DNA of 64,000 nucleotides, from assembly GCF_036588685.1 (NCBI RefSeq), contig NC_086381.1, forward strand, positions 22,134,001 to 22,198,000, given 5' to 3'. Below, one piece after another: positions 2,761-53,094 of this stretch. This DNA is from Mytilus trossulus (taxonomy: Eukaryota). Each line of letters begins with the position of its first letter. Positions within the stretch are counted from its first letter, which is position 1. Under the pieces are notes generated by a model. That model was not told where the DNA came from and ran no database searches. It saw only the letters and a program-made list of their open reading frames with translations. A program made the position numbers and the translations under genes.

Positions 2761-2905
2761 ATTTTCCAGGCATATTAATACATAAATATTTTTCTCTATT
2801 AAATAACCTTTTTTCCGTTAGAAACAATATTACTGTATACGATACTATTTGTTCCAGTGGAAATACTATTCCATGATATTTCTTCCAATAGGAACTTTAA
2901 TATAT

Positions 2906-4540: not shown

Positions 4541-7500
4541 TTGACGCTTTCAGCTATTATTCTTGTCACATATGCCTCTGTCATCTTGTGCATACCAAGA
4601 CAAAAACATCATGAAAAACTGTCAACAGATGAGTTCAAAACAACTTTCTATATCAAAGCTATGTCATGGAAAGACATCACCCCAAGCCTTTGTCTTCAAG
4701 CACAAAGACTAAAAATTCCAATTAATAAGAACAAACTGCCAAGAATCCTGAAAACATTTTTGCTACTTACACTTATATTATCAAATGACATTCATCAAAA
4801 TCCAGGACCCATAAAATATCCATGCGCAATCTGTAATAAATCAGTCAACAGCAACCATAGAGCTGTATCATGTGACAATTGTCAACTATGGGTTCACATC
4901 AAATGTGGTAACATAAGTCCAGAAGATTATAACAAACTGAGTAAATGTGAGAACATAACATGGTCATGTCCAAAATGTAAAATAATTTTAACTGGTACAA
5001 CAATCGAACAAAATAAGCATACAGAACCAATAGTAAACAGCAAAAACAACAGCTTAAACACCTCCAGTACATCAACCGGAAGTGATAGATCAGAGATGAA
5101 TAATGAAAATGATAAAGGATTACTTACCATACTTACAATGAATTGTCGTAGTTTGCGAAGTGAAGCTAAACGAAACATGCTCCAGACAATAATTGAAACA
5201 CATGAACCACACATAGTTCATCTGCAAGAAACACATCTTGACAAAACCATATCAACAGCAGAAATATTAGACCCAGAACAATATGAGATAGTCTGTAAAG
5301 ACCGAATAAATGAAAAAGGTCATGAAGGCGGCGGCATAATTAATGCTGTACGTAAGAACATTGTATGCAACGGAGAAGACACACTAGACACTAACTGTGA
5401 AATAGGATGGACAAAGATACAACTGAAAGGCTGTAAAGCCCTCTACACTGGCTGTTATTATCGTAAACCAGATAATGACCCTACCCCATTACAGAACTTG
5501 AATACTTCAATTAGTAGATTAACGCATAATAATACTCTGCCTTACATAATACTTATTGGAGATTTCAATTTACCAGATATTGATTGGGATGAAGAAGACT
5601 CAAATGGAGGATACACCATCAAATCAAGCCATAACTATTCCAACAAAATTAATAAACTAGCATTAGACATTGTTGAGGAACACTGCTTGCAACAATGTGT
5701 CACAGAACCAACCAGGGAAAAGAACATTCTAGATCTTGTTCTCACAACTAATGATAATCTAGTACAGAAAATGAGCATTACTGATGGAATGAGTGATCAT
5801 CAGATGATAATTACAACTGTCAATGCAAGACCAAAGGTAATTAAGAACAAGCCCAGAAAAGTCTATCAATATAAGAAGGGAAATATGGAAAAAGTTCAAG
5901 AATATTTGAACAGCAAATATGAAAATTTCAAGGAGAAGATAACTGAAATGAACATCGAAGAGTACTGGACTCTATTTAAAACTCACCTTTTTCAAGCAAT
6001 GGACCTACATATACCATCCAAAAATCTGACATCGAGATTTAACTTACCTTGGGTGAATCAACACATCAAGAAGATGATACGTAAAAAAGAACGACTATAT
6101 AAAGTTGCAAAGAAATACCAAACTAAAGAGCACTGGGATAAATTCAAGCAATATAGAAAAGCAGTAAAGACAGAACTTGATATATATCACATAAGAAGTA
6201 TATATTTGATATGTTAGAAGTAAGTCCATCAACATCAGAAGCTTCAACAAACACACAAGACCAATACAGAATAGGGAAAAAGTACTGGAAATACATCAAA
6301 TCTAAAAAGAGAGAAACAGTGGGAGTATCAACACTCAAAGTTAATGGAGAAATATTAGACAACAGCAAAGGAAAAGCAGAAGCACTTAATGAACAATTTC
6401 AATCAGTATTCACGATTGAAGACTTTCAAAGCTTCCCTAAGATAACTGAAAATGAAACATCAAAAATACCAAGCCTACACATTAGTACAGAAGGGTTAAT
6501 CAAACTACTAAAGGGAGTGAACCCAAGCAAGGCAAATGGTCCAGACAATATATCGTGTAGAATATTGAAAGAGTGTGCAGAGTCAATATCACCATATTTA
6601 CAGTTAATCTACACCAAAACACTAAAAGATCAAAGTGTACCACAAGACTGGCTTATTGCAAATGTCATCGCACTATTCAAGAAAGGGGATAAGAGTCAAC
6701 CGGTCAACTATCGACCAGTATCCTTGACATCAGTTCCATGTAAAATAATGGAACATATTATATTTAAACACATAATGAACCATCTTGAGAAGTATAATAT
6801 ACTTGTGGACTTCCAGCATGGCTTCAGAAGCAAAAGATCGTGTGAGTCACAACTAGTCATAACAGCAGAGGATATAACTAGAAATCTGGACAATAACCAA
6901 CAGGTAGATATGCTCATATTAGACTTTAGTAAAGCATTCGACACAGTACCACACCAGCGATTGTTGAAGAAACTAGCATCATATGGTATCGATGGAAACA
7001 TACTTGCATGGTTAGAAGCTTGGCTGACAAAAAGAGAACAACAAGTCACACTGGAAGGAGAAAGATCAAGTACTGCTAAAGTAACATCTGGCGTACCACA
7101 GGGAACAGTTTTAGGACCATTGCTGTTTCTCCTATACATAAACGACATCGGGAATGACATAACATCAAAAATTCGCCTGTTTGCAGATGAGTGCCTACTC
7201 TACCTAGCAATCTCGTCAAAGGATGACTGCAAACATCTACAAGAAGATCTCGACAAAATGGTAAAATGGACAAAAATTTGGCAAATGATATTCAATCCTT
7301 CAAAATGCTATGTCCTTACAATAACCAAAAAAAGGAAAACCATCAACTTCAACTACAACATTAATGGTCATATCCTGGAATCAGTTGCATCAAACCCATA
7401 CCTAGGAGCTGAACTCACCAACACCCAGATGTCATGGGACAAACATGTTAACAAAGTTGTCACCAAAGGAAATAAAGCACTAGGCTTCATACGAAGAAAT

Positions 7501-8214
7501 GTGGGATCATGTCCAGAGGAAGTTAAAAAACATGCCTATCTTGCCCTTGTCCGACCGCACCTTGAATACCCTTGCAGCGCATGGGACCCTCACCTACAAA
7601 AACATATTTATCAGATTGAGATGGTCCAACGCCGTGCAGCACGCTTTATCAAAAGCAATTACTCAGTAGCCTGGAACAGTAACAACTCTTCTAGAAGAAT
7701 AAAATTTAACACCACTAGAAATAAGACGAAAAGTAGCATACATGTATAACACTCTTTCATAAAGCCATCCATGAAAGAGTTGCTATATCTATTCCAACGC
7801 ACATTATAAAACCAAGAAGAACGTCGAGACTCCATCAACCGAAAAACTAAAAGATATGTACAAATAAGGCCAAATAAAGATATATACAAATACAGCTTTT
7901 TCCCTAGGACCATCAGAGACTGGAATACACTACCAGATGAACTATTAGAGATCGAGAGCAGTGAGGAATTCAAGACCAAACTCACCAAGCTCCTCTGTAG
8001 TGGCTAGCAACACAGACAGTCGATACTGGTAGAAAATGTTTTTAACCTGCACCTGTATATAAATTTTTAGCACAATTTTGGAACAATTGGTTGTAAATAT
8101 AGAAAGTTTATTGTCATGTTGGAGGACGCCAAAAGTTAACCCATACTTGAGTGATGGGTCGAAGTATCCTTTTCAAGTGACGACATAGCTCCGCTATGTC
8201 GTAGATGTAGATGT
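4541..8214 (+). mobile_element. CR1-group (CR1/L2/Crack-like) LINE: 2A-like motif, PHD, APE endonuclease, reverse transcriptase; decayed
   Basis: ORF 4541-6217 has DIHQNPGP, a PHD finger (CAIC...CDNCQLWVHIKC...WSCPKC) and APE motifs (LQETHL, GDFNLP, LDLVL, SDH). After a frameshift, ORF 6211-7749 has RT motifs NYRPVSLTS, QHGFR, LDFSKAFD, GVPQGTVLGPLLF and FADE. A second frameshift lies near 7660. The C-terminal YKYSFFPRTIRDWNTLP is followed by a (GTAGAT)n tail ending ~8214. The 5' end is uncertain. Confidence 0.9.
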
Positions 8215-9104
8215 TCAGTCCAACTTCTGTCCTGACTCGTGACCTCGAACTTTGACCACAAGATTTCTTGGAAAATTCGTCTTTCCTTACAATAAAAAGT
8301 CCCAAAACCTTAATCCCATACAAAGTTGATATCAATTGACATAGACTATCTTACAAATAAGCAAAAGTTTCTCAGAATGCCTTACATAAAATCACAACCA
8401 TGTGGCTCAGCTTACGGGACAAGCTACCCAGTGTTTACCTTTTTTAAAAGAGCAGACGAATTGTTTTCGAATCCGGATAATCTATTTACTTTTTTATCCA
8501 CCTTTAAAATTCATATTTCAATTTTACATTTTTTTAAATAATACCTTTCAATCTGTTTGTCTTGTTGTCATGTTAAAAACAAAATATACAATAAATGACA
8601 TTCGAAACTATCGAGTACCTGTTTGGAAAAGTTCCGAAAGGGGTCATGTGCTTTGACCTGACCGCAGTTGATTGATGACTTTAACCGAGATTTTTTAGAT
8701 CATGTCAAACGGCATCGAATCAAAATAGGAACGATTTGAAGATTTAAGATTTTTCTGCTCTCGGCAATTTAGCCAAATAGTAAGTGCACAGTTGAGAATG
8801 ACGAAGTTATGCACAGATTATTTTAATATGTGACAACAGGCACACAAATAAAAAGTAGGGCAACAAACAAAACAGTTATTTTATCGTGTATAGAAATACA
8901 TAAACATGTACTTTAGATCAGCTGATATTCGAATTAATGCATAAAAAGGTTTGTGTTAACGATCATCTTATTACGATTGCACTTATATATAAATATGTAC
9001 ATAATAATGTTATATAATTCTGTAAGAGTCCTTAACTTAGATTCTGACCTCAGGATATAGACATTTACATGATATTATTTCTACTGCAAACTTTTCATGT
9101 CTGA

Positions 9105-9235
9105 GTTATGAGAATGGTCATAATTTACGGAATTGGTTATATACAGGACTTGTTTTCACAGTAAGTTTGTTATGAGAATGGTCATAATTTACGGAATTGG
9201 TTACATGCAGGACTTGTTTTCACAGTAAGTTTGTT
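9105..9235. repeat. Local tandem duplication, 2 x ~64 bp
   Basis: GTTATGAGAATGGTCATAATTTACGGAATTGGTTA...GGACTTGTTTTCACAGTAAGTTTGTT starts at 9105 and again at 9169. Confidence 0.85.
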
Positions 9236-9266
9236 CATCTAAAATAAATCCAATCATGGTGTTACT

Positions 9267-9428
9267 AATACACCTTATCACTAATTTTTTTTTACTGGAT
9301 ATCACACAGGTTCCAGTAAAATTTGGCGTCACAAAACAAAACATCTGACGCCACAATGGAAAAGTGATTGTTGTATGCGTCAAAAGTTCAAGCGGCTGGG
9401 TCAGCCGGGATTAGTGATAAGGTGTATA
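9267..9428. mobile_element. Short inverted-repeat element (MITE-like)
   Basis: TACACCTTATCACTAAT (~9269) is inverted as ATTAGTGATAAGGTGTA (~9410-9426). Confidence 0.55.
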
Positions 9429-9853
9429 ACAAGTAGCTTACATGTTGGTCTATTTTAAGTTTATGAAGCTATTTTTATCTTGTCTGCTGGTCCTTAGAAT
9501 ATAAATTTTATATAAAACTTAAACACAATACTCATTATTACAAAACATAGCCCTCATTGTAATTTGGTTGGTTTTACTTTTAGAGTTCATGAGTAATGCA
9601 TCTTTATGAATAAAAAAAAAGCTAAATCTGTTGTTTCTGTAGCTTTAACATGTTAAGTTTGCCTCAACCAAATGTTATGGAACTCAAACAGTCTATAACA
9701 GTAATCCATATAACCCCCCTCATATATATCATGTATATATACAAACTTTCTAATTAAAAAATAATATACTTTAAAGTTTTGAATCTATATAAAATCATGA
9801 TTATGTCAGATACTGCTTAGCAGCAATATTTTATTCTTTTACATTTATTTTAG

Positions 9854-24999: not shown

Positions 25000-26596
25000 A
25001 TCGAAACATTTGCATTACAAGCATTAGGAAAACCGCTGAAGTTTAACTTTCAATTATCAATATATTTCAATATTCTATGTTTATAAAAGAATACACACGT
25101 TTTTGTCTTGATTCTCAGATATGTTAATTTTTTGTTGTTGTAATCAAACAAAAATCTGTCATGGTTCATAGACATCATCCGGTCAAGGGTAATCTTTTCT
25201 ATGTTTGTGCTGACCACAGAGTGGTTATGTTAATAATGGATAACTTATTTGAATCCATTTCACAGATCTGATGACTTAATGAGAAAGTTAGACGGACAAA
25301 ACTATTTCCTGTTTATCTATTTCCATGCCTTAACAAATAGAAACATAAATACTGGTTTTAGTATTAATTTTTAAAGGATGACACTTTCATGTTAGATAGC
25401 AAGATTGCTTATGTTTGAATATAATTGTTTTGTTCTAATTTGATAAATTAGTTCAGTTTCTGATCATCCTATTTTCAAACATCAAATTCTTCTTTTTGCA
25501 GAACGAGGTGATCAGAAAGTGTGCTCCAACCTCAACTACATTTATTTCTGAATCTGTTCTGAATAAAAAATACTTTAAAAGAGTAACATGTAGAGATTTT
25601 ATTAATTATGTTTTATGTTATAATTTTACCTTGTTTTAAGAGAATGTTTATGAAGGAACATAAAATAGTCATTGATGTATTGCACATGGTTGTGGTACGT
25701 GATTTTCTCAATCAAATAAATTGAATGGAATCATTGTTTTTGTTGTTTTTCCTTTTATTTTCAAGTGTAATTAATTAAAGGTAAAAAGATTATAAAGATT
25801 ACATTGGATTTTTGTTATTTTCATCATCTCCTGTCATCTGTAAACTATTACACATATCTTACCTGAAAATGATAGACCAAATCTAACCCAACATGGCCAA
25901 AATAATCATTTGGCTAGTTTAACTAGAGTTACTGCCCTTTAATGACTTTTGTTTTGCATTTTTACAAAATATCTAATAACTAGGATAGATAGATAGATAA
26001 AAACTGAAATAAGCAAAAGTGATCAGCAATACAAGTTCTACAAACAAATCAACATTACTGACATCATCTAATGACTTCTTATTGAAGTAATTGCTCTTTG
26101 ATGATGAATTATACTTTATTTTGAGTTCCTTTAGTATTATTTGCCTCTCTTTTACCCATATGTAGTGTTTTTGCCTATAATCTCGAAAACTATACTAAAT
26201 AGATACACATTTTCAATAACAAAATTGATAAGCAAGAGACGAACCACAAATAATATTTATGGCCAAAATCATCAATTGACTAATTGGACTTACTCCTATG
26301 TTTTGGTAATTTTTGTTTTTTAGCCTAAGTTTAATTATTGCAATTTCAAGAAAATTTGCAAGAAATGACTATTCAGGTGCAGATATGGAACTGAATAAAT
26401 TCGAATCCATTACGAATGACGGCTTTGAATTAATCTTATAGTAAGGTAAACAAGGTTGATATCTGCAGAATATCTTCTGTATGAAAGACGTATTTATAAA
26501 CACATTGACACATACAATAATAACCTATCGCATATTTAATGAGGAGGCCTTTAACCCGAACTACAAGAAAGTGAAAATGAAGTCAAGAACAAATGA

Positions 26597-26739
26597 CCTG
26601 GCCTTGAAGGCATAAAACTTTGCTCAGTGCTCCGAGCACAAAAATCATGCTCGAAACATGAAATCCAGCAATTTGATTGGTTGACTTTCGAGTCTGAGTA
26701 CAAAAATCATACTTGAAAGTTTTATGACCGTGAGGCCAG
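26597..26739. mobile_element. Short MITE
   Basis: Termini CTGGCCTTGAAGGCATAAAACTTT / AAAGTTTTATGACCGTGAGGCCAG; internal GAG(C/T)ACAAAAATCAT repeats. Confidence 0.55.
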
Positions 26740-27462
26740 ATGTAAGACAGACATATACTCCACTCAGCTTTACCCATATAAGAACTTGTAAACTTTCACC
26801 CCTGATTTATCAGTATTAATGAGATCATATTCATAAAAGTTCCAAATTACTACATGGACATGATAATGAAGTTCAGGTCAATTTGCCATATTTCCTTATA
26901 GCACACAGTCTTGTATATATACCACCTTTATACACAATACTTGAGTCGCATAACTTCACAGGCTGTGAAAAGGTAGTGGACATATACACATTAAATAATG
27001 GCAATATTTGTATGCCGAACTCTGTACTCGGATTCTTCGTTAAAAAAGTTACCAAGGGCAAATGATTGACTCTCTAGGATTAGAAACAGGCTTCCCTGAT
27101 ATTTTTTTTCTACATGCTGAAGAAAAAGAAGTATACTTATTAAAACTATGACGATTGTGCATATACAAGCTGAAAGTTTAAATTTTTTATATACTTGATA
27201 GCTCGGAATTCTGTTTGTTCACAGTAATTTTAAAGTAGTATTTGTCGTAATATATGTACGTAAATGCGAATCTTGAAAAATCTAGAAAAGAAAAGGGGGT
27301 AGGATGTTGAAACAGAAAAATCAAACATATCTACTGACAGTTAACAATTTATTTTATTTAATATTCAACTAAAATCAGAGAGAGTGTTAAAAGATTTTAA
27401 AAGATATTGGAGTATACTTTGAAACGAAATATATTAAAATATACACAATTAAATCAAAAGTT

Positions 27463-29580
27463 CTATTTCCCATGGCGCATAATTTCAAACTCTTGTTGTA
27501 CTCGTTGCCACCCATAGAAGGCTTGCAAAACTTTCACAACTACAAGTTTTGCAGAGCTTGCGAAGTTTTCATGGTTATTGAAAACGAATTCAACCATTGT
27601 TTTTAAATCAAAATCTATAAACGTCAGTGTTTGGTGTTCAAATTTGTCTTTCGGTCCAGTGCTAAATATATCTTTCAAACTATTGGCACTTATTCTATGC
27701 TTTGCATCTATTCTTTCATCTGTTAAATCTACAAAACCACATAATCCCCATTCATGAGTGTCGAATTTCAAGTAAACTGTTGTCAAACAAATAGCATCTA
27801 AGTCACTTCCTGAAAGTTCGAGCCCAAGTTCCTCTTTCAGTCCGCGTGCTGCAGTATTGACTAAGTCAACATACGTTTCACCGTTGTGTATCTTGTAGTC
27901 CGGTTTAGATGCACTTTCGACGGCTCCACAAGTGAATTTTCCTGGCGCAGCCATTCCTTCTCTTTGAACACGACGTGGAAATAAAAACTTTTGAGGTTTA
28001 CCGGGACCTTCATTTGTAAGGACTGCAACATGCAGACCAAACGTGTTACTAAAATATGGATGCACGTCCGCCTTTGAGGGAAGTTCCTCAATCTTTTGCT
28101 GATTTGAAAAATCAATCCATATCTTTCTCATAGCCCTATGATGAATATATTCAGACTCTTTGAATTTGAATTCAATTAGTTGGTTTTCTTCTTCACCGGG
28201 TCTTGCAAATGCCAATCCCTTCAAAGCTACAGTAGGATTGTTGTCTATTACTTTTTTCCTTGCCATTGTCATAAATTCGTCCAGATTATCTATATAATCT
28301 TCCTCAAGATACCACTCATCTGGTCTGTCTCGATATGGAGCCTTTTCCACTTCAATGAGACATTTCAAATCCGAATGGTCGTATCCAGTTGGTCTCATTC
28401 CAGATTCATAGAAACCGATTTGTGACGCTTCTTTGTCAGTACACGAGTCAGCAACAAATATATCAGTCTTATCCATGAAGCCCCAACTAAAGAATTCGGC
28501 TTCGGTCTTCGGATCAGTAGGTAGTAGATAGGGATTATTTTCCAAACTGAAGAAATCTTTCAAAATTATTTCCGCTGTTGGCCTCAAATTTGGAATCTCT
28601 TGATGACACTTTGAAATCACATTTTTCAATGGACCAGCTAGAGTTTTAGGCAAATGAGGAAATGGAATGCTTGCTTGCTGATTTGTAAAGTCAGCAAGCG
28701 TATTCGTCGACATTGTATCATAAGGTCGTTCACCATTCAACATGAATGTCAATACATTCTTGAAGCAATATATGTCCGCCTTTTTATAATCTTCCAATGA
28801 CCATTTACGACCTAATACTTCAGGTGCACCCCATCTTACATGTGCAACGCTGGAACTGGCTATGGACCCGCTCATCCCCGATGACATCCTCTTATCTCGT
28901 GGAGGATTGGTGTTGATTTCATTACCGTGTGTTGCCAGACCAAAGTCTGCCAGTTTTACGACGACTCTCCTCGGGCCAACCTCCAGAAGAATATTATCCG
29001 GTTTAAGATCGCGATGAGCGATGTTCAGGTTATGGAGATAGTTCAATGCACTAATGATCTGCTGTCCAATATTCCAAACCATATCGTAGCGAAGTCCTTT
29101 CCTTTCATGAACTCTCATCCCATCGACATACTTTAATAGGTTTTGATCTATATACTCCATAACCAGAAACATTATTTCACTTGTGTTTCCGTCACTTACT
29201 CGTATATTCATTTCTTGCGATTTTGTTTGTGATATATACCCATATCCTCGATATGCTATTATATTTTCATGGCTCAAGTCCTGCAGTATCTTTCCCTCTC
29301 GAATTTGTGATTTTGATTCTTCTTTAAATATTTTAACAGCAACCTTTGATCCCCCATATCTGCTGGTATATACACATCCAAAATGTCCAGACCCAATCTC
29401 TGCCCATTTTTTATCTAGATCATTCACGTCGACACGACGAACGATTCCTTTATTTTCCTGAGTTTTCGTATAGCCTTTGATGGCATCAAGTAGCTCTAGT
29501 GCTTGATCAATATTCTTTTCGGTACAGACTTTCCCGGTTAATGATTTAAGAAGACCTTCCAATTTATCAAATAACTCCAT
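27463..29580 (-). CDS. Protein kinase fused to a C-terminal divergent NUDIX-like domain; uninterrupted ORF, 705 aa
   Basis: Kinase motifs intact: IGSGHFGCVY, VAVK, LVMEY, HRDLKPDN, LADFG, RWGAPE, DIYCF. The C-terminal half has FGLHVAVLT...LFPRR...PGKFTCGAVES...AARGLKEELGL (Nudix-box-like) and later DKFEH. An in-frame TGA four codons upstream fixes the ATG. AATAAA lies on the minus strand at ~27348-27358. A likely 5'-UTR splice acceptor lies at ~29643. Confidence 0.85.
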   Translation of the reverse strand: MELFDKLEGLLKSLTGKVCTEKNIDQALELLDAIKGYTKTQENKGIVRRVDVNDLDKKWAEIGSGHFGCVYTSRYGGSKVAVKIFKEESKSQIREGKILQDLSHENIIAYRGYGYISQTKSQEMNIRVSDGNTSEIMFLVMEYIDQNLLKYVDGMRVHERKGLRYDMVWNIGQQIISALNYLHNLNIAHRDLKPDNILLEVGPRRVVVKLADFGLATHGNEINTNPPRDKRMSSGMSGSIASSSVAHVRWGAPEVLGRKWSLEDYKKADIYCFKNVLTFMLNGERPYDTMSTNTLADFTNQQASIPFPHLPKTLAGPLKNVISKCHQEIPNLRPTAEIILKDFFSLENNPYLLPTDPKTEAEFFSWGFMDKTDIFVADSCTDKEASQIGFYESGMRPTGYDHSDLKCLIEVEKAPYRDRPDEWYLEEDYIDNLDEFMTMARKKVIDNNPTVALKGLAFARPGEEENQLIEFKFKESEYIHHRAMRKIWIDFSNQQKIEELPSKADVHPYFSNTFGLHVAVLTNEGPGKPQKFLFPRRVQREGMAAPGKFTCGAVESASKPDYKIHNGETYVDLVNTAARGLKEELGLELSGSDLDAICLTTVYLKFDTHEWGLCGFVDLTDERIDAKHRISANSLKDIFSTGPKDKFEHQTLTFIDFDLKTMVEFVFNNHENFASSAKLVVVKVLQAFYGWQRVQQEFEIMRHGK

Positions 29581-30991
29581 ATTTCCTCTCCTTCATTTAA
29601 ACTTCCTGATAGGAAAATTGTACACGAAGAAAGGTCAATAACCTGAACTAAAAATAAACATTATTCGTTCTTATACTTGAAAATATTTATTTAGTTTTGA
29701 ATACTATGTCCTTAATATTATTTCACTTGATTTTAATTTTCCTTTTTTCGTCTTTTTTATTTAAAGAAATGTACGACCGTTAAACAACACGAGAAAAAAG
29801 AAGAAAAACCAAACAGTAATTTAAAAACAAACATGACAAATAAACTTAAACACACATTAAACAATTACCGTTTTACACAAATACAGTCACGAGTTGGCTA
29901 TGTTTTACGCCTAAAGATAATTTTAAGATATATTAAACTTTTGGGTCGAAAATTTAAAGTACCAGATTGAAAGGGGTTGGGCTATTTATTGATATCCTGA
30001 TATTGTCAAGTAGACATAGTTATTAGTCATATTCATATTCTACAAAACAGAAATACACTATCGAATCCCATAATAGAACTCATGAAGCAGAAAACAAGTT
30101 AATACTAGAACATGAAGTTTTTCTTTCCAAATGTCATGCACTAAAAGAAATTGAATAACAAAATTAACGAACTCTTTAAGAAATTTTTTACGGAAAGTCC
30201 CTACGCAAATGGCAAAATCAAAAAATCAAACGAATGGATAACGACTGACATACTCCTGACTTGTGACATACATTTTCTAATGTAGAAAATGGTGGATTAA
30301 ACCTGGTTTTATAGCTAGCATAATCTCTATATATTGACAGCGATGTGTTAACAAGAAAAACAGACATTATAGGTAAAAATGTCAAAAATAGGAGTATAGC
30401 AAGTAACATTGTTTTATAATCTTCATCACTATTATCAGAAACAAATATGTAAAAACTATCATCCAAATAGTTTTAAAATAGTGCTTTAATGCATAAAATA
30501 TTTTAAGATAATGTTTATCTCTATTTTGAAAGTGTTACAAATAAAATATAAGAAACAAAATATTCAGAAGTTGAACAAATAAAAAATGTTATTTTAAATC
30601 CAATTACTAGTATCACTAATTCACTAATGGAGAGGGAATATGTTTTGCAATATTTGTAAACGTAGATAACGCATAAACTGAAACCTTTTTTTCAGCTCAC
30701 AGTCAAGATCGAATTCAGTTTCAGACAAGTTAGAGAGCAAATATAGATTAATACCAAAATGTGTATAATAAACGCAGTGGTTGCTCTGAAGGTCCGACAG
30801 GCATTTTTATGTGCAATCCATGGTTTTTACCGAAGTATCCGTCTTTGAAGAAAATAATAAACATTATCCAGACGATGCCGTTGTTAAAAGGGTATATCAC
30901 ATCCCATAAGTCAGCACTCATTTTCTGAAAATAAAATATCAGACGTACGGTCCAGTATTATATTACATCATTGGCTCTACACATTTTATTA

Positions 30992-40856: not shown

Positions 40857-43800
40857 ATGCCTTGCTGTACAAAAGTTCTCGGGAAAATCCAAGCGAAACA
40901 GATCGAACAAGATGATCTTGGAAAAGCAAAACAATTTAGATTATTCAGCATTGCTCGTCCATACATGCGAAGTTTCCACTCATCGTGGTTTTGTTTTTTC
41001 ATCGCTTTCACTTCATGGTTTGGGTTACAACCATTACTCCCCACTATAAGAAAGGAACTCAACTTATCAAAAACCGACCTTGCTAACTCAGGCATTGCTA
41101 GTGTAGCTGCTACTGTGGCTGTTAGGGTTATTATTGGACCTATGTGTGACAGATATGGACCTCGAAAAACAATGTCTTGTCTTCTAATTTCTGGTGCTGT
41201 ACCTATGGCACTAGCTGGGTTAATCAAAAGTGGCACAGGTCTGATTATATTGCGATTATTCGTTGGAATATTAGGTGGAACATTCGTTCCGTGTCAGTTC
41301 TGGACTACAGCAATGTTTAGTTCTAAGATTGTTGGAACTGCTAACGCCATAGCTGCAGGATGGGGAAATCTAGGTGGAGGCTTTACTTTTATATTAATGC
41401 CGGGATTATTCCGGTTAATGGAAGTATTTGGAGCACATGAATTTCTGGCATGGAAGATAGCAGTCGTTATACCTTCAGTTATATGTGTTCTCATAGGTAG
41501 GTTGTACAAATTTCAATATACAATGAACATGAATGCATGGGCAATTAAAATTTGAGCTGCTGAACTCACTATTCCGTAAAACAATAACAAAACATATGAT
41601 TAATTTGACTATTTTTTTAAATTATCATTGGGTATATTTCAATCAATCAGATTCGTATAGAAAAATTTGCATGTTTTTGGAATTTTGGGTCCTCAATGCT
41701 CTTCAACTTTGTACTTGTTTGGATTATAACTTTTTTGATCTGAGCGTCACTGGTGAGTCTTATGTAGAAGAAACGAGCGCCTGCCGTATCAAATTATAAG
41801 CCGGTACATTTAATAACTATATTCAATATACTTTCAAAGTAAACTGAAAATAACTGATCAAAAAATGATATTGCACGGTTATTTTCAAAATATCAGACAC
41901 AATCGGAACAGCCAATCAAATGAATTAGTGCTCTACATCTAGGTTATTGACAATAATAACATAACAATCATAGTCTTTGTACGAAGTTGATGCAAGCATA
42001 TGTTGACCAAGAGAAGTATATTGACACAGAAACTCGCCCCGAGCCAATTTACTTCTTTCATGTCAATATATTATCGTATCGACGGCATGTAAAGGTTACA
42101 AACTGATATCAGAGTATACCACAAAATGTTATTTTGTTTTCATTTAATTTAGAATAGGCTATTACCTCGGCGTAATAATATGAGCATTGCAACATTGGAA
42201 ATGTTCGAAAAACCCATGCGAATTTCCCTCTTCTTTAAGATACAAGCATACTTTTTAGACTGTCTTCCAAATATGTTTACTGTTCAGTCTTGAAAAAAAA
42301 CTAACTAAAAAAAGAGAGGCGGAAGATACTAAAAGAATATTGACAATCGTAAGTCGTAAACAAACACAAAACGCCATAGCACAAACCGAAGAACAACAAA
42401 GGCCACAAGAGTCTATAGAGCATTAAAACTAAAGACTATGCAACAGCATCAAAACAATGAAATAAAACATACAAAACCATAATCGGTTTTAACATGAGTA
42501 GCAAATGAAAAACTATCGATTTGATTAATGTACAAAACTATTATCAAATTGAAAGTAATTGCTTGCTATTAAAAAAATTTGTGTATTTTTTTCAGGGATT
42601 TTAATACTGTTCACTTCTGATGATTGTCCAAACGGCCATTGGGACAACAGAACATTACCACCATCAGCCAAATTACCAGAAAAGAAAACAGATGAAACAC
42701 AAGGTGTTGCGAATTTAGGATTTAAAAATGACTCACAGACAGAAGAGATGTCAAAGGAAGGTAAGATATAGAAAAAAACATCAAAATATTTTTTTACCGG
42801 AATTATCATATATAACAGGCTTTGAGAGGAAAAATGTTTTTTGAAAATCAAAGCCATACACATAGAAGAAGATAATCTTAGAAAAGCAAACAAAATTAGA
42901 TCATTCATCATTACTCGTCTAAACATGCATAGTCATAAATGCTCTCTAGTTACACATGTTACATGTACGATACTGTTGTTAAGTCATTAAGGATTGCATA
43001 TTTCGACATTGCTAAATATATAACTTCCCCCGACTAGCAATTACGAACACCTATGTTACTAATCTTTCTGATTTCAACTGAACCTGTTCTAAATTGTCGA
43101 AAAAATATACTGTCAGTAACAACAAATCTTTGGATTTACAGAAAATGTAACGTAGAATATCATATACTTTAAATTTTAAGGTTTGATGAAAAAAAAGAAT
43201 AACCGAAGTCATTCTTTGATGTTTTACGTTTCCACACTATAATATTTCTAATAGAGCATTTGCATTATTCACGTATCAGGATACGCACACGGATCGACGT
43301 ATACGTATCGAACAAATTTGTTTACAATAATGATTTCACCCCGATATCAATAAAAATTAAATGCATTATTAGATATTTTCATCGGGACCAACTTGACTTT
43401 ATTTATTCTTTCCTCATATACGTGATATACGATACGTCGATACGGATACGCCAGCAAATACTTGATTAATGGAAATGCTCTATTATTACTGATGACGTAT
43501 TTTCACCAAAAAAGTCCCGCGTGTTTAGAAGATAAGTTCAACGCACTGTGCAGAACATACACACAAGATCTATTGCGTACCTTCTTTTTGTCCTCATTAT
43601 GTATGCAGTTAGTGCTACCAGACTTTAAACAAATAAAAATCATTCAGGTCCAAGTTTAAACTAAACAAAATAAATGACAGAAGACCTGTCTTTAAATTTG
43701 AATGATGCCCTAGAAAAACCAAAGTTCGTAAACACAAATTATGTAATATGTACGATAATACTTTTTTTTGTAACAAAAGATTAAATGAAAGAAATGATGG

Positions 43801-45537
43801 ATTTCAAAACTACATGAATTATCTTTGACTTTGTCATAATTATACATTCACTGTTTACCTAATTTGAAAATAAGAAAATGCCTGTACCAAGTCAGGAATA
43901 TGAAAGTTGTTGTCCATTCGTTTGATGTGTTTGATGTGTTTGAGCTTTTAATTTTGCCATTTGATTAGGGACTTTTCGTTTTGAATTTTCCTCGGAGTTT
44001 AGTATTTATGAGATATTACTTTTAAAAAAACTTTGAATTTTTCAAAATACCAGGTATTTTTGTCCCCACGATACATATATGACATTAGCTGTATTTATTA
44101 GGTCCTCAATGATATTCAACTTCGTACGCAAAAACGAGACTATCAAACCTGTTTATAACAAATCGACATTACATCGATGCAAGCCCACACGAGAATCATA
44201 CCATTTAGGAGATAACTGTATTGTATTTTAAGCTCCGACGGCATCAATCGGGGATTTGATAGTCGCAAATTAAGTTTACTGGCGACGCGTTAGCCGTCGG
44301 AGCTTAAAATACAATATTGTTATCTCCATTCTAATGTATCTGACAGAAAACAACGTTAAAACATGTATTTAAAATCTGTCATATGCCGTCTGCGCTTGCG
44401 CGTACGTTCCATAGCAACAATTGTCAATTGATGCCATGTAAATAATTGACGTTATCCAATCAAAATGAACGTTACAAACGTTGTTGCATTAGAATTCACA
44501 ATATGTGTTCCAAACCAGATTTATAGTTATTTATTCGTTTTTAATTTATTATCAACTTGGATTTATACTTACGTTAATCAGTTTGATCCTCCTCTGAAAT
44601 TAGCGTATGTTATAAATTTTTATTTTTTATTTATAGTTTTAAAAATTATTCAAATTGTTATTAACTACATACCAAAACTTATTTAAACTAAAATACAAAC
44701 TGCCATTTACTTTCAGTCGAAAAGGAAACAAATGTTGACAAACTTGAAGAGCAGACGTCTCCAATAGAACAGAGAGAGGACAATAAAGAGCCAACCAGCC
44801 TAGTTGGCAAGTTTTGGGCAGCTGTTACGATGGTGGTTTTAGTGATGCAGTACGGAATGTGTTTTGGAGTAGAAATAGCTGTCAATACCGTTATGAACCT
44901 TTATTTTCTATATAGATTTAAAAAGGAGGACTGTTTGAAGGATATCAATAATCCATTTAATAAAACAAACATGACTACACCAAGTCTTGTCCGACTGGAC
45001 GACACTAACGAATGCAGCATTCTTGATCAGGATACAGCTAGTTTGATTGCATCCTTATTTGGTCTAATGAATCTGTTTGCTAGGGCAATGGGTGGGATTT
45101 ATTCTGATGTTTTGCGTCAACATTTAGGAATTGCGGGTCGTCTTACAGCCCATTTCACTTGTCTTGTAGGAGAGGGCGTAATGCTAATAATCTTTAGTAC
45201 TATGACTACTATACCCAACGCTATTGCTGTCATGATATTTTTCAGCGTGTTCGTACAAATGTCCGAAGGGACAACCTATGCTATCGTCCCTTATGTACTT
45301 CCATTACACATTGGTATTGTAGCGGGATTAGTGGGAGCAGGTGGGAACGCTGGCGCTCTGATATGGAATACAATATGGCGACAGTTAGTGGAGGACGATC
45401 CAAGTAGGTGGTTTTGGCTTATAGGATTAACCGTTTTATCCGGAAGCGTACTGACGCTTTTAGTTGAGGTACAAGATCAGCGGATCTGGGATGTATTTGT
45501 TTGTGGTAAACGTCGTAAAAAGAAGTACAACTTATAG
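40857..45537 (+). CDS. NRT2: NRT2/NarK-family (NNP, MFS) nitrate/nitrite transporter, paralogue 1; 3 coding exons, 541 aa
   Basis: Exons 40857-41496, 42596-42760 and 44717-45537 are GT-AG and phase-consistent. Motifs: ARPYMRSFHSSWFCFF, conserved Arg in VRVIIGP..DRYGPR, FVPCQFW, signature AAGWGNLGGG, DDCP.G, QYGMCFGVE, second Arg in NLFARAMGG, and GLVGAGGNAG. Confidence 0.92.
41640..41820 (+). mobile_element. Retrozyme-like dispersed repeat with a degenerate type I hammerhead, in NRT2-1 intron 1
   Basis: GAGCGTCA-CTGGTGA-GTCTTATGTAGAA-GAAAC-GAGC-GCC-TGCCGT. Homologous relics at ~37430-37476 (-), ~40428-40580, ~54762-54825, ~59620-59790 (-), ~33880-34205 (core deleted) and at the start of each 585-bp unit. 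Confidence 0.65.
43271..43450. mobile_element. Small CGTATC-rich inverted-repeat element
   Basis: CGTATC...ATCGACGTAT..CGTATC versus GATATACGATACGTCGATACGGATACG. CpG-rich against an AT-rich intron. Confidence 0.5.
44205..44496. mobile_element. Hairpin-type non-autonomous element in NRT2-1 intron 2
   Basis: ~35-bp inverted repeat GGAGATAAC..TATTGTATTTTAAGCTCCGACGGC / GCCGTCGGAGCTTAAAATACAATA..GTTATCTCC, followed by a second short pair ATTCTAATG / CATTAGAAT. Same architecture as 63722-64000. Confidence 0.65.
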
Positions 45538-46848
45538 AAATTTAAACAATATTTGATGGATTGTTTTTTTCAATTCATTATTATTTCAATAAATATGCAT
45601 CTATATATTGTGTCAATTATATAAATATATAATATGTATATAAATTGGTTTTAAGAATAAACAACGATGTAGTTGTATCAATGTAAAGTACAAATGTACA
45701 TTTTCTTAAATTGATGACATACAAACTTATGATTACATGAAGAATAACTGTCAATTGGATATCATATGAATAATAAATACACATTGTGTTCGATTATATT
45801 ATAGGTTTGATAAAATACAAAGCGAATAATACAAACTACATGAAATACAAGAAAAGCATATGATTGAACTTTCAAATTATGATAGGAACCTTTTTCTCTT
45901 CAACATGTATTTCTGTAGCAATACAAAAATAATATTTTTTTTCATTCTTCAGTTAAAACAGCTGACCCAATAGTCATTAAATGACACCCATACGATGCGG
46001 AAATGCGGCACGACAACGTATTAGCGTATGCAACTCCAATTAGAACAGATTAATAATAAATGAAACTTTTTTTCTTTGGCACTACAACAAAGGTAGTGTT
46101 CAACGTTACATTTTATCATTAAATTGCAAGTATGTTGTCCCGAAAAGGGAGACATTGTTCTCGCTATACCTTCATTACTGCATTTTGAATCTAAATATCA
46201 TAGCTTATGGTAGATTCAAAAATTCAAAGGTGGACATACTATAGTTCTATCTATGTTCAATATTTATTCCAAAACAAGTAATTAAAATTCAAACCAATGT
46301 TCCTTTGATATATTGAATATAACATAATGCAAATATTCAAACAGTCATGCAGTTAATCGACAAAATAAGATAAAACAAAATTTCACACTCTATGTGAATC
46401 TAATCATTATTGTAACGACACTCTGATTTCCAAATAACACTAATCACTCATACTTGCTGAATATTCCTGCAGTCATTTAAATCAGAGTTTCCTAAAATAA
46501 ACCCAATACTCATGTCCTTAGTATGTCGTCAATAACATATTTTAAGTTGTCTCTGAAGATTAATTGCAGAATATATTATGGTCATACATAATTTATGTTT
46601 GTTATGCATATTCTTCAGCATCTGTACATCGGAAATGGATCAGTCATGTGCATGTACATCAATGCATTTCAGGTGCAAGAGGATTATGTGCCCTTTGCCA
46701 TGAATCATGAACTCTGTTGGATGTAAGGATTTGCAAATCTGTGGATAGAGGTTTTATATAAAGAAGTATTATATTAAACGATTTATATTGGAATACGCTG
46801 TAGCATCAACATCTTTGTTTTCATATTTAAGCAAACTATGATAGATGT

Positions 46849-47745
46849 AAAATTGAGAATGGAAATGGGGAATGTGTCAAAGAGACAACAACCCGACCAA
46901 ATAAAAAACAAAACAGCAGAAGGTCACCAACAGGTCTTCAATGTAGCGAGAAATTCCCGCACCCGGAGGCGTCCTTCAGCTGGCCCCTAAACAAATATAT
47001 ACTAGTTCAGTGATAATGAACGCCATACTAATTTCCAAATTGTACACGAGAAACTAAAATTAAAATAATACAAGACTAACAAAGGCCAGAGGCTCCTGAC
47101 TTGGGACAGGCGCAAAAATGCGGCGGGCTTAAACATGTTTGTGATATCTCAACCCTCCCCCTATACCTCTAACCAATGCAGAAAAGTAAACGCATAACAA
47201 TACGCACATTAAAATTCAGTTCAAGAGAAGTCCGAGTCTGATGTCAGAAGATGTAACCAAAGAAAATAAACAAAATGACAATAATACATAAATAACAACA
47301 GACTACTAGCAGTTAGCTGACATGCCAGCTCCAGACTTCAATTAAACTGACTGAAATATTATGATTTCATCATATGAACATCAGGCACAATCCTTCCAGT
47401 TATGGGTTTAGTATCATACCACTATAACATATATGAGAAGAACATAACCCGTGTCATGCCAACAACTGTTTTTAGAATAAATGTGTTTAGTTCCGATGCA
47501 AAGACCTTATCAGTGACTCAATATTAACGCCAAAATATGCAATCTTTAATGACTTGACAACAGTATCGGAATGATGTCCCTTTTAATAAGTCTATTCAAA
47601 GGTTTTGTAAGTTTCTGAGGTGAATACTGACACCTTTGTGCTTTATAAAGAATATTTCCATAAAAAATTGGATGTGAAATACCTGAAAGTATTAAAAGTC
47701 TGCATGTTGAGCTATATTTACGAGTGATGTCTTTATACCGATGAT
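46849..47745 (+). repeat. Long copy of high-copy dispersed repeat (family B)
   Basis: AAAATTGAGAATGGAAATGGGGAATGTGTCAAAGAGACAACAACCCGACC... Near-identical reverse fragment at ~54086-54214; others at ~1203-1271, ~38397-38477 and a diverged copy at ~39390-39845. Confidence 0.8.
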
Positions 47746-48838
47746 AAATTCTTGTATAGGGAACAAATTAGATAAGTATTTTCATGAGTGTAATGATACT
47801 AATAAGAAAGAAAAAACTATATCATACAGAGATAGAAAACATAGGTAGAAAAAAAGAAGTTTAACTATAAATGTCCTCCGTCTGCATCGGACTACTAGTA
47901 TTTCACATTGGAATACAATACATTTTGGAATTGAATTTTTATTTCCTTTGTAAAAATATGACAGTCATCATAATTTATTTTCAGTCGAGACTTTTGAAAT
48001 TTATAGTACTAATAAAACTGAAATAAATTTGCAATAATGTTAAGGGTATCATTTCATTCATCAATACTGGCTAATGAATGTATCTTATAAATAACAACAT
48101 TATTGAGCCCAATTGAATTGCCCAATTTGATGCGACTGTCATATAAGTTGTCTGTTTGTCTTTTTCATTTTTAACCATGTTTTTGTCAGTTTATTTTCGA
48201 TTTATGAGTTTGAATGTCCCTCTGGTATCTTTCGTCCCCTTTTAGAGGTTTAGCTAGCTATAAAACCAGGTTTAATCTACCATTTTCTACACAAGAAATG
48301 CCTGTTCCAAGTCAGAAATATGACAGATTATATTTAAATATGAAAGGTATAAGCACTTTTCGTTAGACATATGCTGCATTTCAATAAACATCTCAATTGA
48401 CACAATACCGATATCCCCTTTTTGCCGCTGAACACGAGCAGATTGCATTTTCATTAATTATGATATTACAAATATTCATATTTACTTGATTCCTAGTAAA
48501 CAAATGAAAAAGCTGTTATAAAATTCGTTTTATCAAGCTTATTTGCTACCGTACCATTTAATGTGACCTACCGAATAAGACTGCTCACCAAATTTTTGAT
48601 ATAACATAAGCAACACGACGAATGTCACATGTGGGGCATAATCTCCTTACCCCTTCCGGAGCACCTGAGATCACCCCTAGTTTTTGGTGGTTTTTTTTTA
48701 ATCCTTTAGTTTTCTATGTTGTGTCATGTGTACTATTGTTGTCTGTTTGTCTTTTTCATTTGTAGCCATGGTGTTGTTAGTTTATTTTAAATTTATGAGT
48801 TTGACTGTCCATTTGGTATCTTTCGTCCCTGTTTTAAG

Positions 48839-49619
48839 CACAGGCACTTGTCTCAAATTTTTTTTCCCCTATATACCTTAATATAACACAAGGTACTTAA
48901 CTAAATTTTTTGAAAAATGACACCCAGTCCCGAATTCACGTTATTTTGTTTATTTCTCGGTTGTCAAACCTACTTAAAGTTAATATGCCGTAAATCTAAA
49001 TTGATTTATCTACACAATGGTATATGACACGACTATCATTGTTGTCGGGATCATTGGTAGCAGGCCTCAGAAGTCGGTCAACGGGATGTTTTTTGCATTC
49101 GTCTCAATTTTTGGCAACACCCAGCCCGCAGTGATTGAATTATTATAAAAAAATATTAAAATAAAAACTGTTACGTTATGTTAATTATGTGAAACAAACC
49201 CAAATAACTTTGTTATGAAACACACGTGTACACAACGACACTAATGTAGAGTTATAAATTGACCAAAATTTCCCACATTTATTTTTAGCCAGACGATTGA
49301 CCAATGAGAAACCAGTATAAAATTACATGCGGACCGGGTGTTGCCAAAAATTGAGACGAATGCAAAAAAACATCCCGTTGACCGACTTCTGAGGCCTGCT
49401 ACTAATGATCCCGACAACAGTGATAGTCGTGTCATATACCATTGTGTAGATAAATCAATTTAGATTTACGGCATATTAAGTTTAAGTAGGTTTGGAAACC
49501 GAGAAATAAAAAAAATTACGTGAATTCGGGACTGGGTGTCATTTTCTAAAAATTTAGTTAAGTACCTTGTGTTATATTAAGGTATATAGGAAAATTTTTT
49601 TTTGAGACAAGTGCCTGTG
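48839..49619. mobile_element. Foldback DNA transposon with ~295-bp TIRs and an 8-bp TSD (P-element-like termini)
   Basis: CACAGGCACTTGTCTCAAA... / ...TTTGAGACAAGTGCCTGTG with an exact TSD GTTTTAAG (48831-48838, 49620-49627). About 190 bp of AT-rich non-coding spacer. Confidence 0.9.
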
Positions 49620-52600
49620 GTTTTAAGAGCGTTATCCATTCTGTATGTAAGTTGAAATCACTTGTTTTATCAATTCAAATCTGTAATTATTTATATTGGA
49701 ATACCGTTGTTATTTAAAACACAACTTAGATTATAAGGATTATATCGTTTTGATCACTCGAAATTCCCTCGAGATCAATGCGACTTTAATGTTATTTTAG
49801 AAGCAACACAAGTTAAAATAGTGTGCATCCCTCCAGAATAAAGAAAAAAGACGATAAACAAAAGGTAAGAAATCACGCGAACTCCAAACGGTAAAACACC
49901 GGGAATGTATAAAAAAAAGAGTGTTGCTAAAAATAAAATAAAATAATACCGAACCCCAAGGAAAAGTACAAACGGAAAGTCCCTACGAAAAGGGCAACAT
50001 CAAACACATCAAACGAATTGATAATAAATGTCATATTCCTGAATTGGTACAGGTATTTTCGTAAGTAGAAAATTGTGCATTAAACCTGATTTTATAGCTT
50101 ATTATCATTGTTTCTAGAAAAAAAAGTTTCTCCTGACAAAACTCTTTATTCGAGGGGAGATGCCTGGTATCAAGGATTTTGCTGAAACAGCGTTTTTCAA
50201 ATCCCATATCTCCAGGTGTGATATAAGTGTCGACGCAAATAATATGTAGCTAACTTGGTATCTTAAGACTTTCACGAGAGTTGTTTTATATGGAAATGCA
50301 CGTACACACCTTACATTTTACCTTACATTTCATGTTTTATGACATAACCAAATCAATATTTATTTACCTTTCGAATAGTCCGATAACTTCCTTGTTAATT
50401 TCGACATTAAAGGAATGTTAAACAATATAGGTATATATATATACTTTATTCCCTACTTTCGTATAACCTTTTCCTTCATACAAATACATGTGTTTGTTTG
50501 AATGTTAGTAAGTGTGTTTTGTTTTATATGTTTTTGCATTCTCAATTTAGATATTTGATGGTGTTTATTCGTGCATTAAGACAAGTCGAATGACATTTAA
50601 CTTATGCAATCTGGATGATTCAGTAATTATTGTCATTAAATTTTCGTTATCTATCATACTTATGAATTGAAAAGTGTTTCCTATATTTCTTCCTATTAAC
50701 AGTAGAGGAAAGGAGTAACGAATGCAATAAGCAGCAGTAAAAACAAACCAAAACTAACAATGTAAAGCCGATAAAAAAAGAGAAGTGAAACGCTGGGAAT
50801 CAGAGACATACAAAACAGTTAGACCAAATAATATGATACATGAGGCGAAACGGTCAGGAACCATCCGAACTTAGCAATTTCAACAGACTGAGAGTTACGC
50901 TTCAACAAAAAAAAAGGTTTATCTCATGTATAGATCTACCTTTAAACAACATTCTTAATCATAAACAAGGATTTATACATTGTTTCAAGTGCGGTATATA
51001 TATCCATTTATATATATTGATCTTTGGATTATTCAATGGTTGTCTTTAGGCGTTCCAGAAAAAGAAAAGACAAGAAGTAAAATTTTTTTTTTTTTTAATT
51101 TGGTAAGTAGCAAACTAAAATTTTCGAGAGCAACACTTCTTGTGGTCTTATAGCACATCTCTTTTTAAAAGATTTTCAGTTTTAAAGATACGTATTCCTA
51201 TTTTATTCGAATGTTTTGTATTGATATTGCATATCTCTAGTTTGTCTACCATAATCTCCTAGGGCGTTGCAAACTTCTAAACTAAATCCTCCCGTGAAAG
51301 TATGGATATCCAACTTTATACTCCTCATACAAGTTTTTTTTCTGATTAAGGATGATTGGGAATTAAATTGTTAGAGTAAATTGAAGATGATTGTAAAAGA
51401 CTGGAAAGAAAAACAATGATGTGAAGGTTTTCTCCAATTTAAAACATACATCTTAAATAGATTTATGTAAGACTATTCTCTAAGTCATATCATTTCTATA
51501 ATGCTTCTCGCACTGTATAACTATTCTTTCTTTAATTTTCAAATTTTGACTAGAAAAATATAATGGTATCGACCACTTTGCATTCTTAATGAATCGGGAT
51601 TTGCAAATTCTCAAAAAATTAATAAAAAAACCAAGCATGCGAATGTTGAAATCTTATATCATGCAATGTACAGTACTTTTCAAATAAAATAATTGAGAAA
51701 AAATGTAATATAGCATTTCAAAGCAAACACTATTAAACCACATATAAATTGAGCTGTGAAATTCTTCACTTTAGCAGGATGTTGGACTCCTTAGATAAAC
51801 TGACAAATCATTGCACATTTTGATTTTTTGTATCCACATTACAACTATACTGTTCTGTTTAAATATAAAAAGACAACTTTAATTGGTGTGTATAAAAGCA
51901 TAATTTGTTTTAAATCCGTATTTTCAAACACAATCCCTATTAAAACCAATTTGTGGTCATGCTTTTGGTTTGGGTATTTTGAGGTGTAAATCCTGTTGCT
52001 TTACATGCTATTTCCCTTTCCCTTTTTGTCAAGATAAGTCATGAATATTTCATGTAAGAGAAAATTCAAAAAAAAATTGATATAATAGCAATAATTATAA
52101 TGATAATACTATTGGTAATAATAACATCAATAATAAAATAATAATAATAATAAAAATACGTAGACTGACAATAATGATAATACTATAACTAAATAGATTA
52201 GTATCTGTTATGAGTCATTTTTGGCATTTAAGACGCAACTTGTAAAACAAAAATTGGTTTTCACTTTTATTGTGTATATACGTATAAAAGTAGGAATAGA
52301 AAAAAAATATAAAAGAGAGCCGAAAGATAACAGAGGTACTGTCAAACTTATAGATCGAACATAAACTGTCAACGCCATAGCTAAAAAAGAAAAATACAAA
52401 CAGACAAATAATAATGCACAAGAAACAATAGAGAAAACTAAAGACTACGCAATACGAATCACATCGAAGGTGCTCCGGAAGGGTGAAAAGATCCTAGTAA
52501 ATAGTTTTTTTTATATACCAAAACCATCAAACAGTGTTCTATTTACATTCAAAAGAAATTGAATACAGTAGAAAGACGATATTTACAAGAACGACCAAAG

Positions 52601-53094
52601 CGAGTAAAGCCCAGCACAAAAAAAGCTGGAACCTATAACATTCAACTGGGTTTCCAGATTACGATAAATTTGATAAATGTTAAGGCCGGTAGAAATTCAT
52701 TTCGAAATATCTTTTATAAGCAAGCTATAACAATTTTCCATTCATTTTTATTGTTGCGATTATCAAAAACGTTGCGTCCTGATTTTGTTGCAATCAACAT
52801 ATTTCATTGCATGTTTTAAAAAGAAAATTACATGACACAACCTTCCTAACCTAGGATTAATGCGTAGGGCACTGCCACTAATTCTTGTGCCAAGATGAAG
52901 TCTTACAAGACCATCGACAGACCATTACACAACATGGTGTATGCTAAGATTAAAAAAACACTTATGAACTTATATATAAAGCTAAAGTAGTATTGTAAAA
53001 GAGTGATCTTCCGCGTATTAAATAACTATTGCTTACCAATTATACTCGGTGTCTGTTACCAAGAATCTAAATCAATTAGGTCTCATACTACTGA

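Follow-up and report, generated by a model that had tools for sequence, protein, structure and literature searches.

The 64,000-nucleotide stretch of the Mytilus trossulus genome that was analysed here (NCBI RefSeq assembly GCF_036588685.1, contig NC_086381.1, positions 22,134,001 to 22,198,000 of the forward strand) is referred to below as the window, and all positions are counted from its first letter. It has an N count of 0 and carries, on the reverse strand at 27463..29580, a complete single-exon coding sequence (CDS) of 705 amino acids (aa) and a stop codon. The open reading frame (ORF) listing gives an ATG start and 0 internal stops, and a transcript-like contig (X6 record 31) is colinear with the genome over 27409-29483, so that the CDS is uninterrupted, as an earlier reading of this DNA made without database searches (the original prediction) had described it. 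The gene is single-copy, since homology searches returned no second copy in the window or in the whole 1.3-Gb assembly. From its motifs and from structural models, it is predicted to encode a two-enzyme protein in which a catalytically complete TKL-like Ser/Thr protein kinase is followed by a NUDT22-like Nudix module. The full-length AlphaFold2 (AF2) model, with a predicted local distance difference test (pLDDT) score of 84.8 and a predicted template modelling (pTM) score of 0.69, places the module directly after the kinase C-lobe.

The protein begins with a predicted helical hairpin (aa 1-45; 29446..29580, minus strand), formed in the full-length model by helices 2-14 and 21-43, in line with the short helical N-terminus proposed originally. 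This part is poorly conserved, with 9-28% identity to non-mytilid orthologues, and is longer in most of them. The putatively active TKL-like Ser/Thr kinase domain occupies aa 56-345 (28546..29415, minus strand), where Pfam Pkinase (PF00069) matches aa 60-342 with an E-value of 2.8e-37 and 129 bits, against a gathering cut-off of 31.7. All of the catalytic motifs are present: the GxGxFG glycines G63 and G65, the VAVK lysine K83, the alpha-C glutamate E95, HRDLKPDN (189-196), DFG (212-214), RWGAPE (249-254), D269 and R333. They agree with the complete kinase described in the original prediction and are conserved in orthologues, with G63/G65, K83, E95, H189-N196, D212-G214 and P253-E254 at least 90% conserved in 48 of them. 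The activation loop includes a Ser-rich insert (aa ~220-246; 28843..28923, minus strand) that is predicted to be disordered (pLDDT <50 at aa 227-243) and varies in length in the alignment.

The closest sequence in the PDB is RAF1 (E 4.6e-16), with BTK, PKR and ULK1 tied, and a fold search with the kinase gave Z scores of 27-28 alike for the TKL members BRAF, CRAF, ALK5 and CTR1 and for Csk, Fes and ASK1. Because the best PDB E-value is only ~5e-16 and TK and STE members reach equal structural scores, none of the named families (RAF, MLK, RIPK, IRAK, LISK, STKR) could be assigned, and the kinase is best placed, on sequence and model, as an orphan TKL-like branch. It has the HRDLKPDN loop and the W-x-APE P+1 loop in common with the TKL kinases of immune and death signalling (RAF, MLK/TAK1, RIPK, IRAK). 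We know of no TKL kinase that carries a Nudix module.

Sequence searches gave no name to the remaining part of the protein. Its C-terminal region (~aa 362-705) matched no family in Pfam, NCBIfam or PADLOC, the Pfam NUDIX family PF00293 gave no match to the window protein even at E<=1, and a phmmer comparison of the module with PDB sequences returned nothing meaningful and no NUDT22. In order to obtain a model of the module, aa 346-705 were folded by AF2 with a 66-sequence alignment (pLDDT 94, pTM 0.91). Searching the PDB with this model by Foldseek gave human NUDT22 as all of the top six matches (E 4.5e-11; TM score ~0.7, normalised by target length). An exhaustive VIA-align comparison with 48,161 representative chains, which is independent of Foldseek, likewise ranked NUDT22 first, with Z 21.9 and 271 of 290 residues aligned. 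The alignment to NUDT22 (5LOR_A) spans both of its domains (model residues 17-344, root mean square deviation 3.6). Dozens of generic Nudix structures were found at Z 9-14 (best 13.9), alignable only from model residue ~164 on. Therefore, aa ~362-508 (28057..28497, minus strand) would correspond to the NUDT22-specific N-terminal domain, and aa ~509-705 (27466..28056, minus strand) to the Nudix-fold core with its C-terminal helices, the most conserved part of the protein.

Profile comparisons linked the module to NUDT22 as well: a mixed alignment (A2) reached NUDT22 with E 1.2e-3, and an alignment of 81 distant homologues (A3) with E 1.1e-9, the N-terminal domain being covered. The same A3 profile matched the mussel module with E 1.5e-69, and identity between the module and NUDT22 is 11-13% in the structure-based alignment. 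On model and profile evidence the C-terminal region thus appears to be a Nudix fold, specifically a NUDT22-like one. Orthology to NUDT22 is unsupported, because phmmer gives no PDB match, and the module seems much nearer to a prokaryote-type clade that is described below. The divergent Nudix fold of the original prediction is upheld by structure prediction and fold search, and the strings that it quoted (NNPTVALKGL..., CGAVES at 551-556 and RGLKEELGL at 579-587) occur as written. The extension that it saw before the Nudix core is there too, and can now be described as a NUDT22-type N-terminal domain.

Human NUDT22, a UDP-glucose/galactose hydrolase (PDB 5LOR, 5LOU, 5LF9), has the same two-domain fold as the module, and both are without a conventional Nudix box; the human protein is stand-alone, ~300 aa long and without a kinase, whereas the mussel module is kinase-fused. 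The N-terminal domain of NUDT22 is said to bind the uridine diphosphate (UDP) moiety. NUDT22 is regarded as an outlier of the human Nudix family that 'lacks a conventional NUDIX box' (PMC5688067), and it splits UDP-glucose into uridine monophosphate (UMP) plus glucose-1-phosphate, feeding pyrimidine salvage (PMC10101856). It has also been proposed as a UDP-Glc-RNA decapping enzyme (PMC11253889), and X29, Dcp2, NUDT12 and NUDT16 are among our fold matches, many Nudix enzymes being decapping enzymes. The module might accordingly strip nucleoside-diphosphate-X (NDP-X) caps (UDP-Glc, UDP-GlcNAc or nicotinamide adenine dinucleotide, NAD) from host or viral RNA while the kinase signals or regulates. 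We give this reading a slim chance, as the protein has no RNA-binding domain, the decapping enzymes reach Z <=13.7 versus 21.9 for NUDT22, and decapping by NUDT22 is itself only a proposal.

The Nudix box of the mussel protein (aa 547-587; 27820..27942, minus strand) departs from the canonical GX5EX7REUXEEXGU. It reads PG-x4-G-x2-E555, then a 23-residue spacer that includes D561, then R579-G-L-K-E583-E584-L-G-L, so that Gly replaces Glu after the Arg. The long insert reported earlier after CGAVES corresponds to the 23 residues between E555 and R579, where the canonical box has 7. Across 66 aligned homologues, both animal and distant, R579 never varies, and E555, D561, E583, E584, R460, E465, Y478, R537, D645 and E648 are each at least 90% conserved; the metal-binding glutamates are among these nearly unchanged residues. 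Compared with cnidarian, sponge and chordate proteins, the mussel protein is 55-64% identical in the Nudix core, 33-42% in the kinase and 9-28% in the N-terminus.

A non-canonical box (RG for RE, with the 23-residue spacer), the absence of a Pfam NUDIX match and the presence of TIRR structures among the fold matches would suit a silent scaffold or protein-interaction Nudix, such as NUDT16L1/TIRR, with no role beyond localising or dimerising the kinase. We consider this improbable: E555, E583, E584, R579, D561, D645 and E648 hardly vary among the animal and prokaryotic homologues, and conservation is higher in the Nudix core than in the kinase, a pattern typical of an active site. Such conservation is what a working metal-binding site, or else a highly specific pocket for a ligand, would show, and it counts against a silent scaffold.

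Transcript-like contigs from four public runs of three studies are confined to 27090..29618 (minus strand), which gives the gene a 5' untranslated region (UTR) of ~38 nt and a 3' UTR of at most ~370 nt. The non-repeat flanks (26879-27075 and 29637-30030) are essentially without contigs. We took the runs as transcriptome because their coverage is restricted to the gene in contig sets of 70-270 Mb, versus a genome of 1.3 Gb. Synonymous changes account for 15 of the 25 best-supported variant sites of the CDS and nonsynonymous ones for the other 10, a crude ratio of nonsynonymous to synonymous polymorphism (pN/pS) of ~0.18. The gene appears to be transcribed and under purifying selection, the two properties without which, by the original prediction, the proposal would fall. 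The contigs end at 29602-29618, and a polypyrimidine tract with an AG after it lies ~60 nt upstream of the ATG (29619-29650, minus strand), with a possible 5'-UTR acceptor near 29641; there may be a 5'-UTR exon and an intron that were not assembled.

A search with aa 346-705 retrieved 74 proteins from seven animal phyla, nearly all of 680-770 aa and with the same layout of kinase and module. The nearest to the mussel protein are from Mytilus coruscus and M. galloprovincialis, which confirms the mollusc source given in the original prediction. The bivalves include Mytilus, Crassostrea, Saccostrea, four scallops, Pinctada and Solemya, and there are matches from the gastropod Haliotis, the chiton Liolophura and the brachiopod Lingula. 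Further matches are from Branchiostoma, the hemichordate Glandiceps, the tunicates Ciona, Styela and Clavelina, the sponge Oscarella and a large number of cnidarians, among them Nematostella, Acropora, Porites, Exaiptasia and Xenia. Arthropods, nematodes, echinoderms and jawed vertebrates are all absent from the named matches of this search. The only vertebrate match, from Petromyzon marinus (P0073), is divergent, and its alignment breaks into unrelated sequence after the RGLxEEL box; it is therefore a gene that is truncated or decaying, or else poorly modelled. In their source annotations the orthologues are 'uncharacterized' or carry the names of unrelated kinases (MAP3K7, CTR1, dlk-1-like, HRR25-like), since no Pfam family covers the C-terminal 340 residues.

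In a midpoint-rooted maximum-likelihood tree of the module, the animal sequences form one clade with a Shimodaira-Hasegawa approximate likelihood-ratio (SH-aLRT) support of 95, in which molluscs, cnidarians, tunicates and sponges each group together and the internal order roughly tracks animal phylogeny. A monophyletic module tree that roughly follows the species tree indicates ancient vertical inheritance, not horizontal gene transfer (HGT) or domain capture in a mollusc. By sequence and phylogeny, then, the gene is an orthologue of an ancient, vertically inherited and unnamed animal family that goes back to the base of Metazoa. By the original prediction, full-length orthologues forming a vertically inherited metazoan family already characterised would have told against it; the vertical inheritance is borne out, the characterisation is not. 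Three further proteins (P0083, P0138 and, from the jakobid Andalucia godoyi, P0158) are kinase-fused and lie to the animals' side of the midpoint root, so that the fusion may predate animals, although long branches make this unsure.

These results bear directly on the origin that had been suggested originally, namely a recent mollusc chimera produced by retroposition, domain capture or HGT of a bacterial Nudix beside an animal kinase. The CDS is without introns, a long interspersed nuclear element (LINE)-type retrotransposon lies within the window, and the nearest non-animal relatives of the module look prokaryotic. This origin is nevertheless highly improbable. Several mollusc classes share the identical architecture with Porifera, Cnidaria, Brachiopoda, Hemichordata, Cephalochordata and Tunicata; the animal modules, with 55-64% Nudix-core identity, form a single clade whose branching is close to the species tree; and other kinase-fused forms, one of them from Andalucia, stand on the animal side of the tree. 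Retroposition of an already fused gene may have taken place in the mussel lineage, but it would leave the architecture unexplained. Recent HGT or domain capture in a mollusc was thus rejected, the same architecture extending from sponges to tunicates under a vertical phylogeny. Neither direct or inverted repeats flanking the gene, nor a clear genomic poly(A) tail, nor a target-site duplication was found in the search for retrogene scars, and an old retrogene signature would have decayed. At most, the intron-free CDS reflects intron loss of an already fused gene in the mussel lineage.

Other Mytilus assemblies contain tandem paralogues, 66-72% identical, namely P0005/P0010 on one contig of M. 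galloprovincialis and, in M. coruscus, P0002/P0026 and P0004/P0069, each pair again sharing a contig. The single copy found here, against pairs in other Mytilus, may be a copy-number or presence/absence variation.

Other elements of the window were noted as well. High-copy repeats lie on either side of the gene, at 26485-26878 and 30031-30424, where the summed depth of contigs reaches the thousands and loose ends and variable joints are many; at the settings used, neither matched the other as a repeat. At 4541-7749 (plus strand) lies a non-LTR (non-long terminal repeat; LINE-type) retrotransposon that looks largely intact; its two long overlapping ORFs, of 558 and 512 aa, code for an endonuclease/PHD protein and a reverse transcriptase. 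Four ORFs of 215-235 aa start at 40857, 44830, 54871 and 57268 within 40857-57972 (plus strand).

Searching for relatives outside animals, we scanned 1.84 billion representative proteins and obtained only 160 matches. Those beyond the animal family are 22-32% identical and mostly 350-400 aa long. Further homologue searches from P0083 and from an additional alignment (A4) added almost nothing. Partner domains were assigned by Pfam on 81 distant homologues. TIR is fused to the module in four of them (P0101, P0136, P0144, P0177), and also in a protein of the locus L006 from a genome scan; caspase is fused in two (P0172, P0191), EAD11 in P0206, HTH in P0135, PilZ in one and a kinase in three. Weak NUDIX matches were seen in 3 of the 81, that of P0197 barely over the cut-off (21.3 versus 21.1 bits) and the others sub-threshold. 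These findings accord with the resemblance to bacterial Nudix-like domains of multidomain proteins that had been pointed out originally: the closest non-animal relatives are multidomain or stand-alone and of conflict-system type, with TIR, caspase, EAD11 and HTH fusions among them. Four stand-alone prokaryotic homologues (P0097, P0102, P0108, P0116) begin with an N-terminal hydrophobic helix followed by a basic stretch in alignment A4, which suggests that the stand-alone module is membrane-anchored.

The prokaryotic NUDT22-like proteins, whether fused to TIR, caspase, EAD11 or HTH or membrane-anchored, have the signature residues YxHxRA, FSxxFG, RRS, CGxVE, RGLxEELG, HEW and DKxE in common with the mussel module. 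They differ from it in their partner, which is one of these domains or a hydrophobic helix and not a TKL-like kinase, and in being rare, patchy and located in genomic islands. Three bacterial loci were located, all proteobacterial. In Lentisalinibacter (L002) the gene adjoins a phage-type integrase in an island, with NYN-domain and SHOCT genes nearby. In a Rubrivivax metagenome-assembled genome (L003, P0136) the module is in a TIR fusion, and a second TIR gene lies two genes away (8673-9560, plus strand). In the third (L006, genome G076) TIR, a hydrophobic segment and the module are joined, and a HIRAN gene adjoins (2161-2937, minus strand). The TIR gene of L003 and the HIRAN gene of L006 may, together with the fusions beside them, be parts of small defence operons. 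The module was present in only 2 of 401 sampled genomes of one phylum, a rare and patchy occurrence of the kind that accessory defence genes typically show. Within animals, Pfam assigned a Death domain, a kinase and the module to an amphioxus paralogue (P0041), a Death and kinase layout that is also that of RIPK1 and IRAK. EADs are adaptor domains that link effectors to NTPase-centred conflict systems. A literature search found no report of an experimental characterisation of the prokaryotic NUDT22-like proteins, or of a defence or immune function for them.

Taken as a whole, the reading that we put forward is of a kinase coupled to a module that binds or hydrolyses an NDP-X ligand, with immune or stress signalling as the probable setting. 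The Nudix module would bind, and probably hydrolyse, a nucleoside-diphosphate-X compound, for which a UDP- or ADP-sugar, or the ADP-ribose-type products of TIR enzymes, are candidates. Occupancy or turnover of the ligand would be coupled to the kinase in the same polypeptide, and a small-nucleotide signal would be converted to phosphorylation, or else switched off. Innate-immune, stress or cell-death signalling would be the most likely setting, because TIR, caspase, EAD11 and HTH domains accompany the module in its prokaryotic relatives and because of the Death-domain paralogue of amphioxus. As this setting rests on guilt by association, we regard the chances of the whole reading as evenly balanced.

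A constant domain with alternative partners, here TIR, caspase, kinase or HTH, is usually a shared ligand sensor or an adaptor-recruited effector. NrtR, in which a Nudix domain serves as an ADP-ribose sensor fused to an HTH, belongs to the first kind. NrtR-type regulators, found among our fold matches at Z 11.6, are a precedent for Nudix as the ligand-sensing part of a fusion; their Nudix domains have largely lost the catalytic residues and control DNA binding, whereas the mussel module keeps its acidic residues and would have a kinase as output. Nudix has been listed among the effector domains of NTP-dependent conflict systems (eLife 2020, PMC7159879). Either role may hold: the NrtR precedent would favour a sensor, and the EAD11 fusion and the conflict-system paper (PMC7159879) would favour an effector.

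Several points weigh against an NDP-X-coupled immune or stress kinase. The module could bind its ligand without cleaving it, because RG replaces RE and the spacing of the box is abnormal. Ligand, hydrolysis and coupling to the kinase are predictions for every member of the family. What ties the family to immunity is a set of relatives that are 22-32% identical and a single amphioxus paralogue, and the mussel protein itself is without a Death, TIR or CARD domain. The runs behind the contigs are only presumed to be RNA. Finally, the nearest solved structure is that of human NUDT22, a UDP-glucose hydrolase of metabolism (PMC10101856), which points to metabolism as much as to immunity.

The last point leads to a metabolic enzyme, in which a NUDT22-like hydrolase of UDP-glucose, UDP-galactose or another NDP-sugar would be joined to a kinase that regulates sugar-nucleotide, glycogen or pyrimidine-salvage metabolism, without a special immune role. 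NUDT22, which feeds pyrimidine salvage (PMC10101856), is the best match by structure and by profile, the catalytic acidic residues are conserved, and the gene is single-copy here, unlike the typical expanded immune families of mussels. We nonetheless think this unlikely. The module is no more than 11-13% identical to NUDT22, it lies far nearer to the clade that is linked to TIR, caspase and EAD (by A3, E 1.5e-69 for the mussel module versus 1e-9 for NUDT22), a Death-domain paralogue exists, and loss from the main model lineages would be unusual for core metabolism.

A more far-reaching form of the immune or stress reading can be offered tentatively, and we lean against it. The family would be an unrecognised arm of ancestral animal innate immunity, in which a kinase is gated by a nucleotide signal (TIR-derived and ADP-ribose-type, or an NDP-sugar) that the NUDT22-like module senses and then destroys, a eukaryotic counterpart of the bacterial TIR- and caspase-Nudix proteins. 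It would have been overlooked because no orthologue is among the named matches from jawed vertebrates, insects or nematodes.

Protein kinases and Nudix hydrolases are each well known, and a conserved animal protein that joins both is apparently undescribed. Our literature search turned up no account of a protein that combines a kinase with a Nudix or NUDT22-like part, in agreement with the original prediction, which knew of none. The Nudix half belongs to an unnamed clade that links NUDT22 with prokaryotic conflict-system proteins, and it provides context for a poorly understood human outlier. Interest in the family has three supports: its module is of the NUDT22 type, the family stands at the base of animals, and its nearest outside relatives occur in TIR, caspase and EAD architectures. 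It is therefore a candidate link between the small-nucleotide signalling of bacterial conflict systems and the phosphorylation cascades of animal immunity, one that is testable in tractable hosts that have the family, such as Nematostella, Ciona and oysters.

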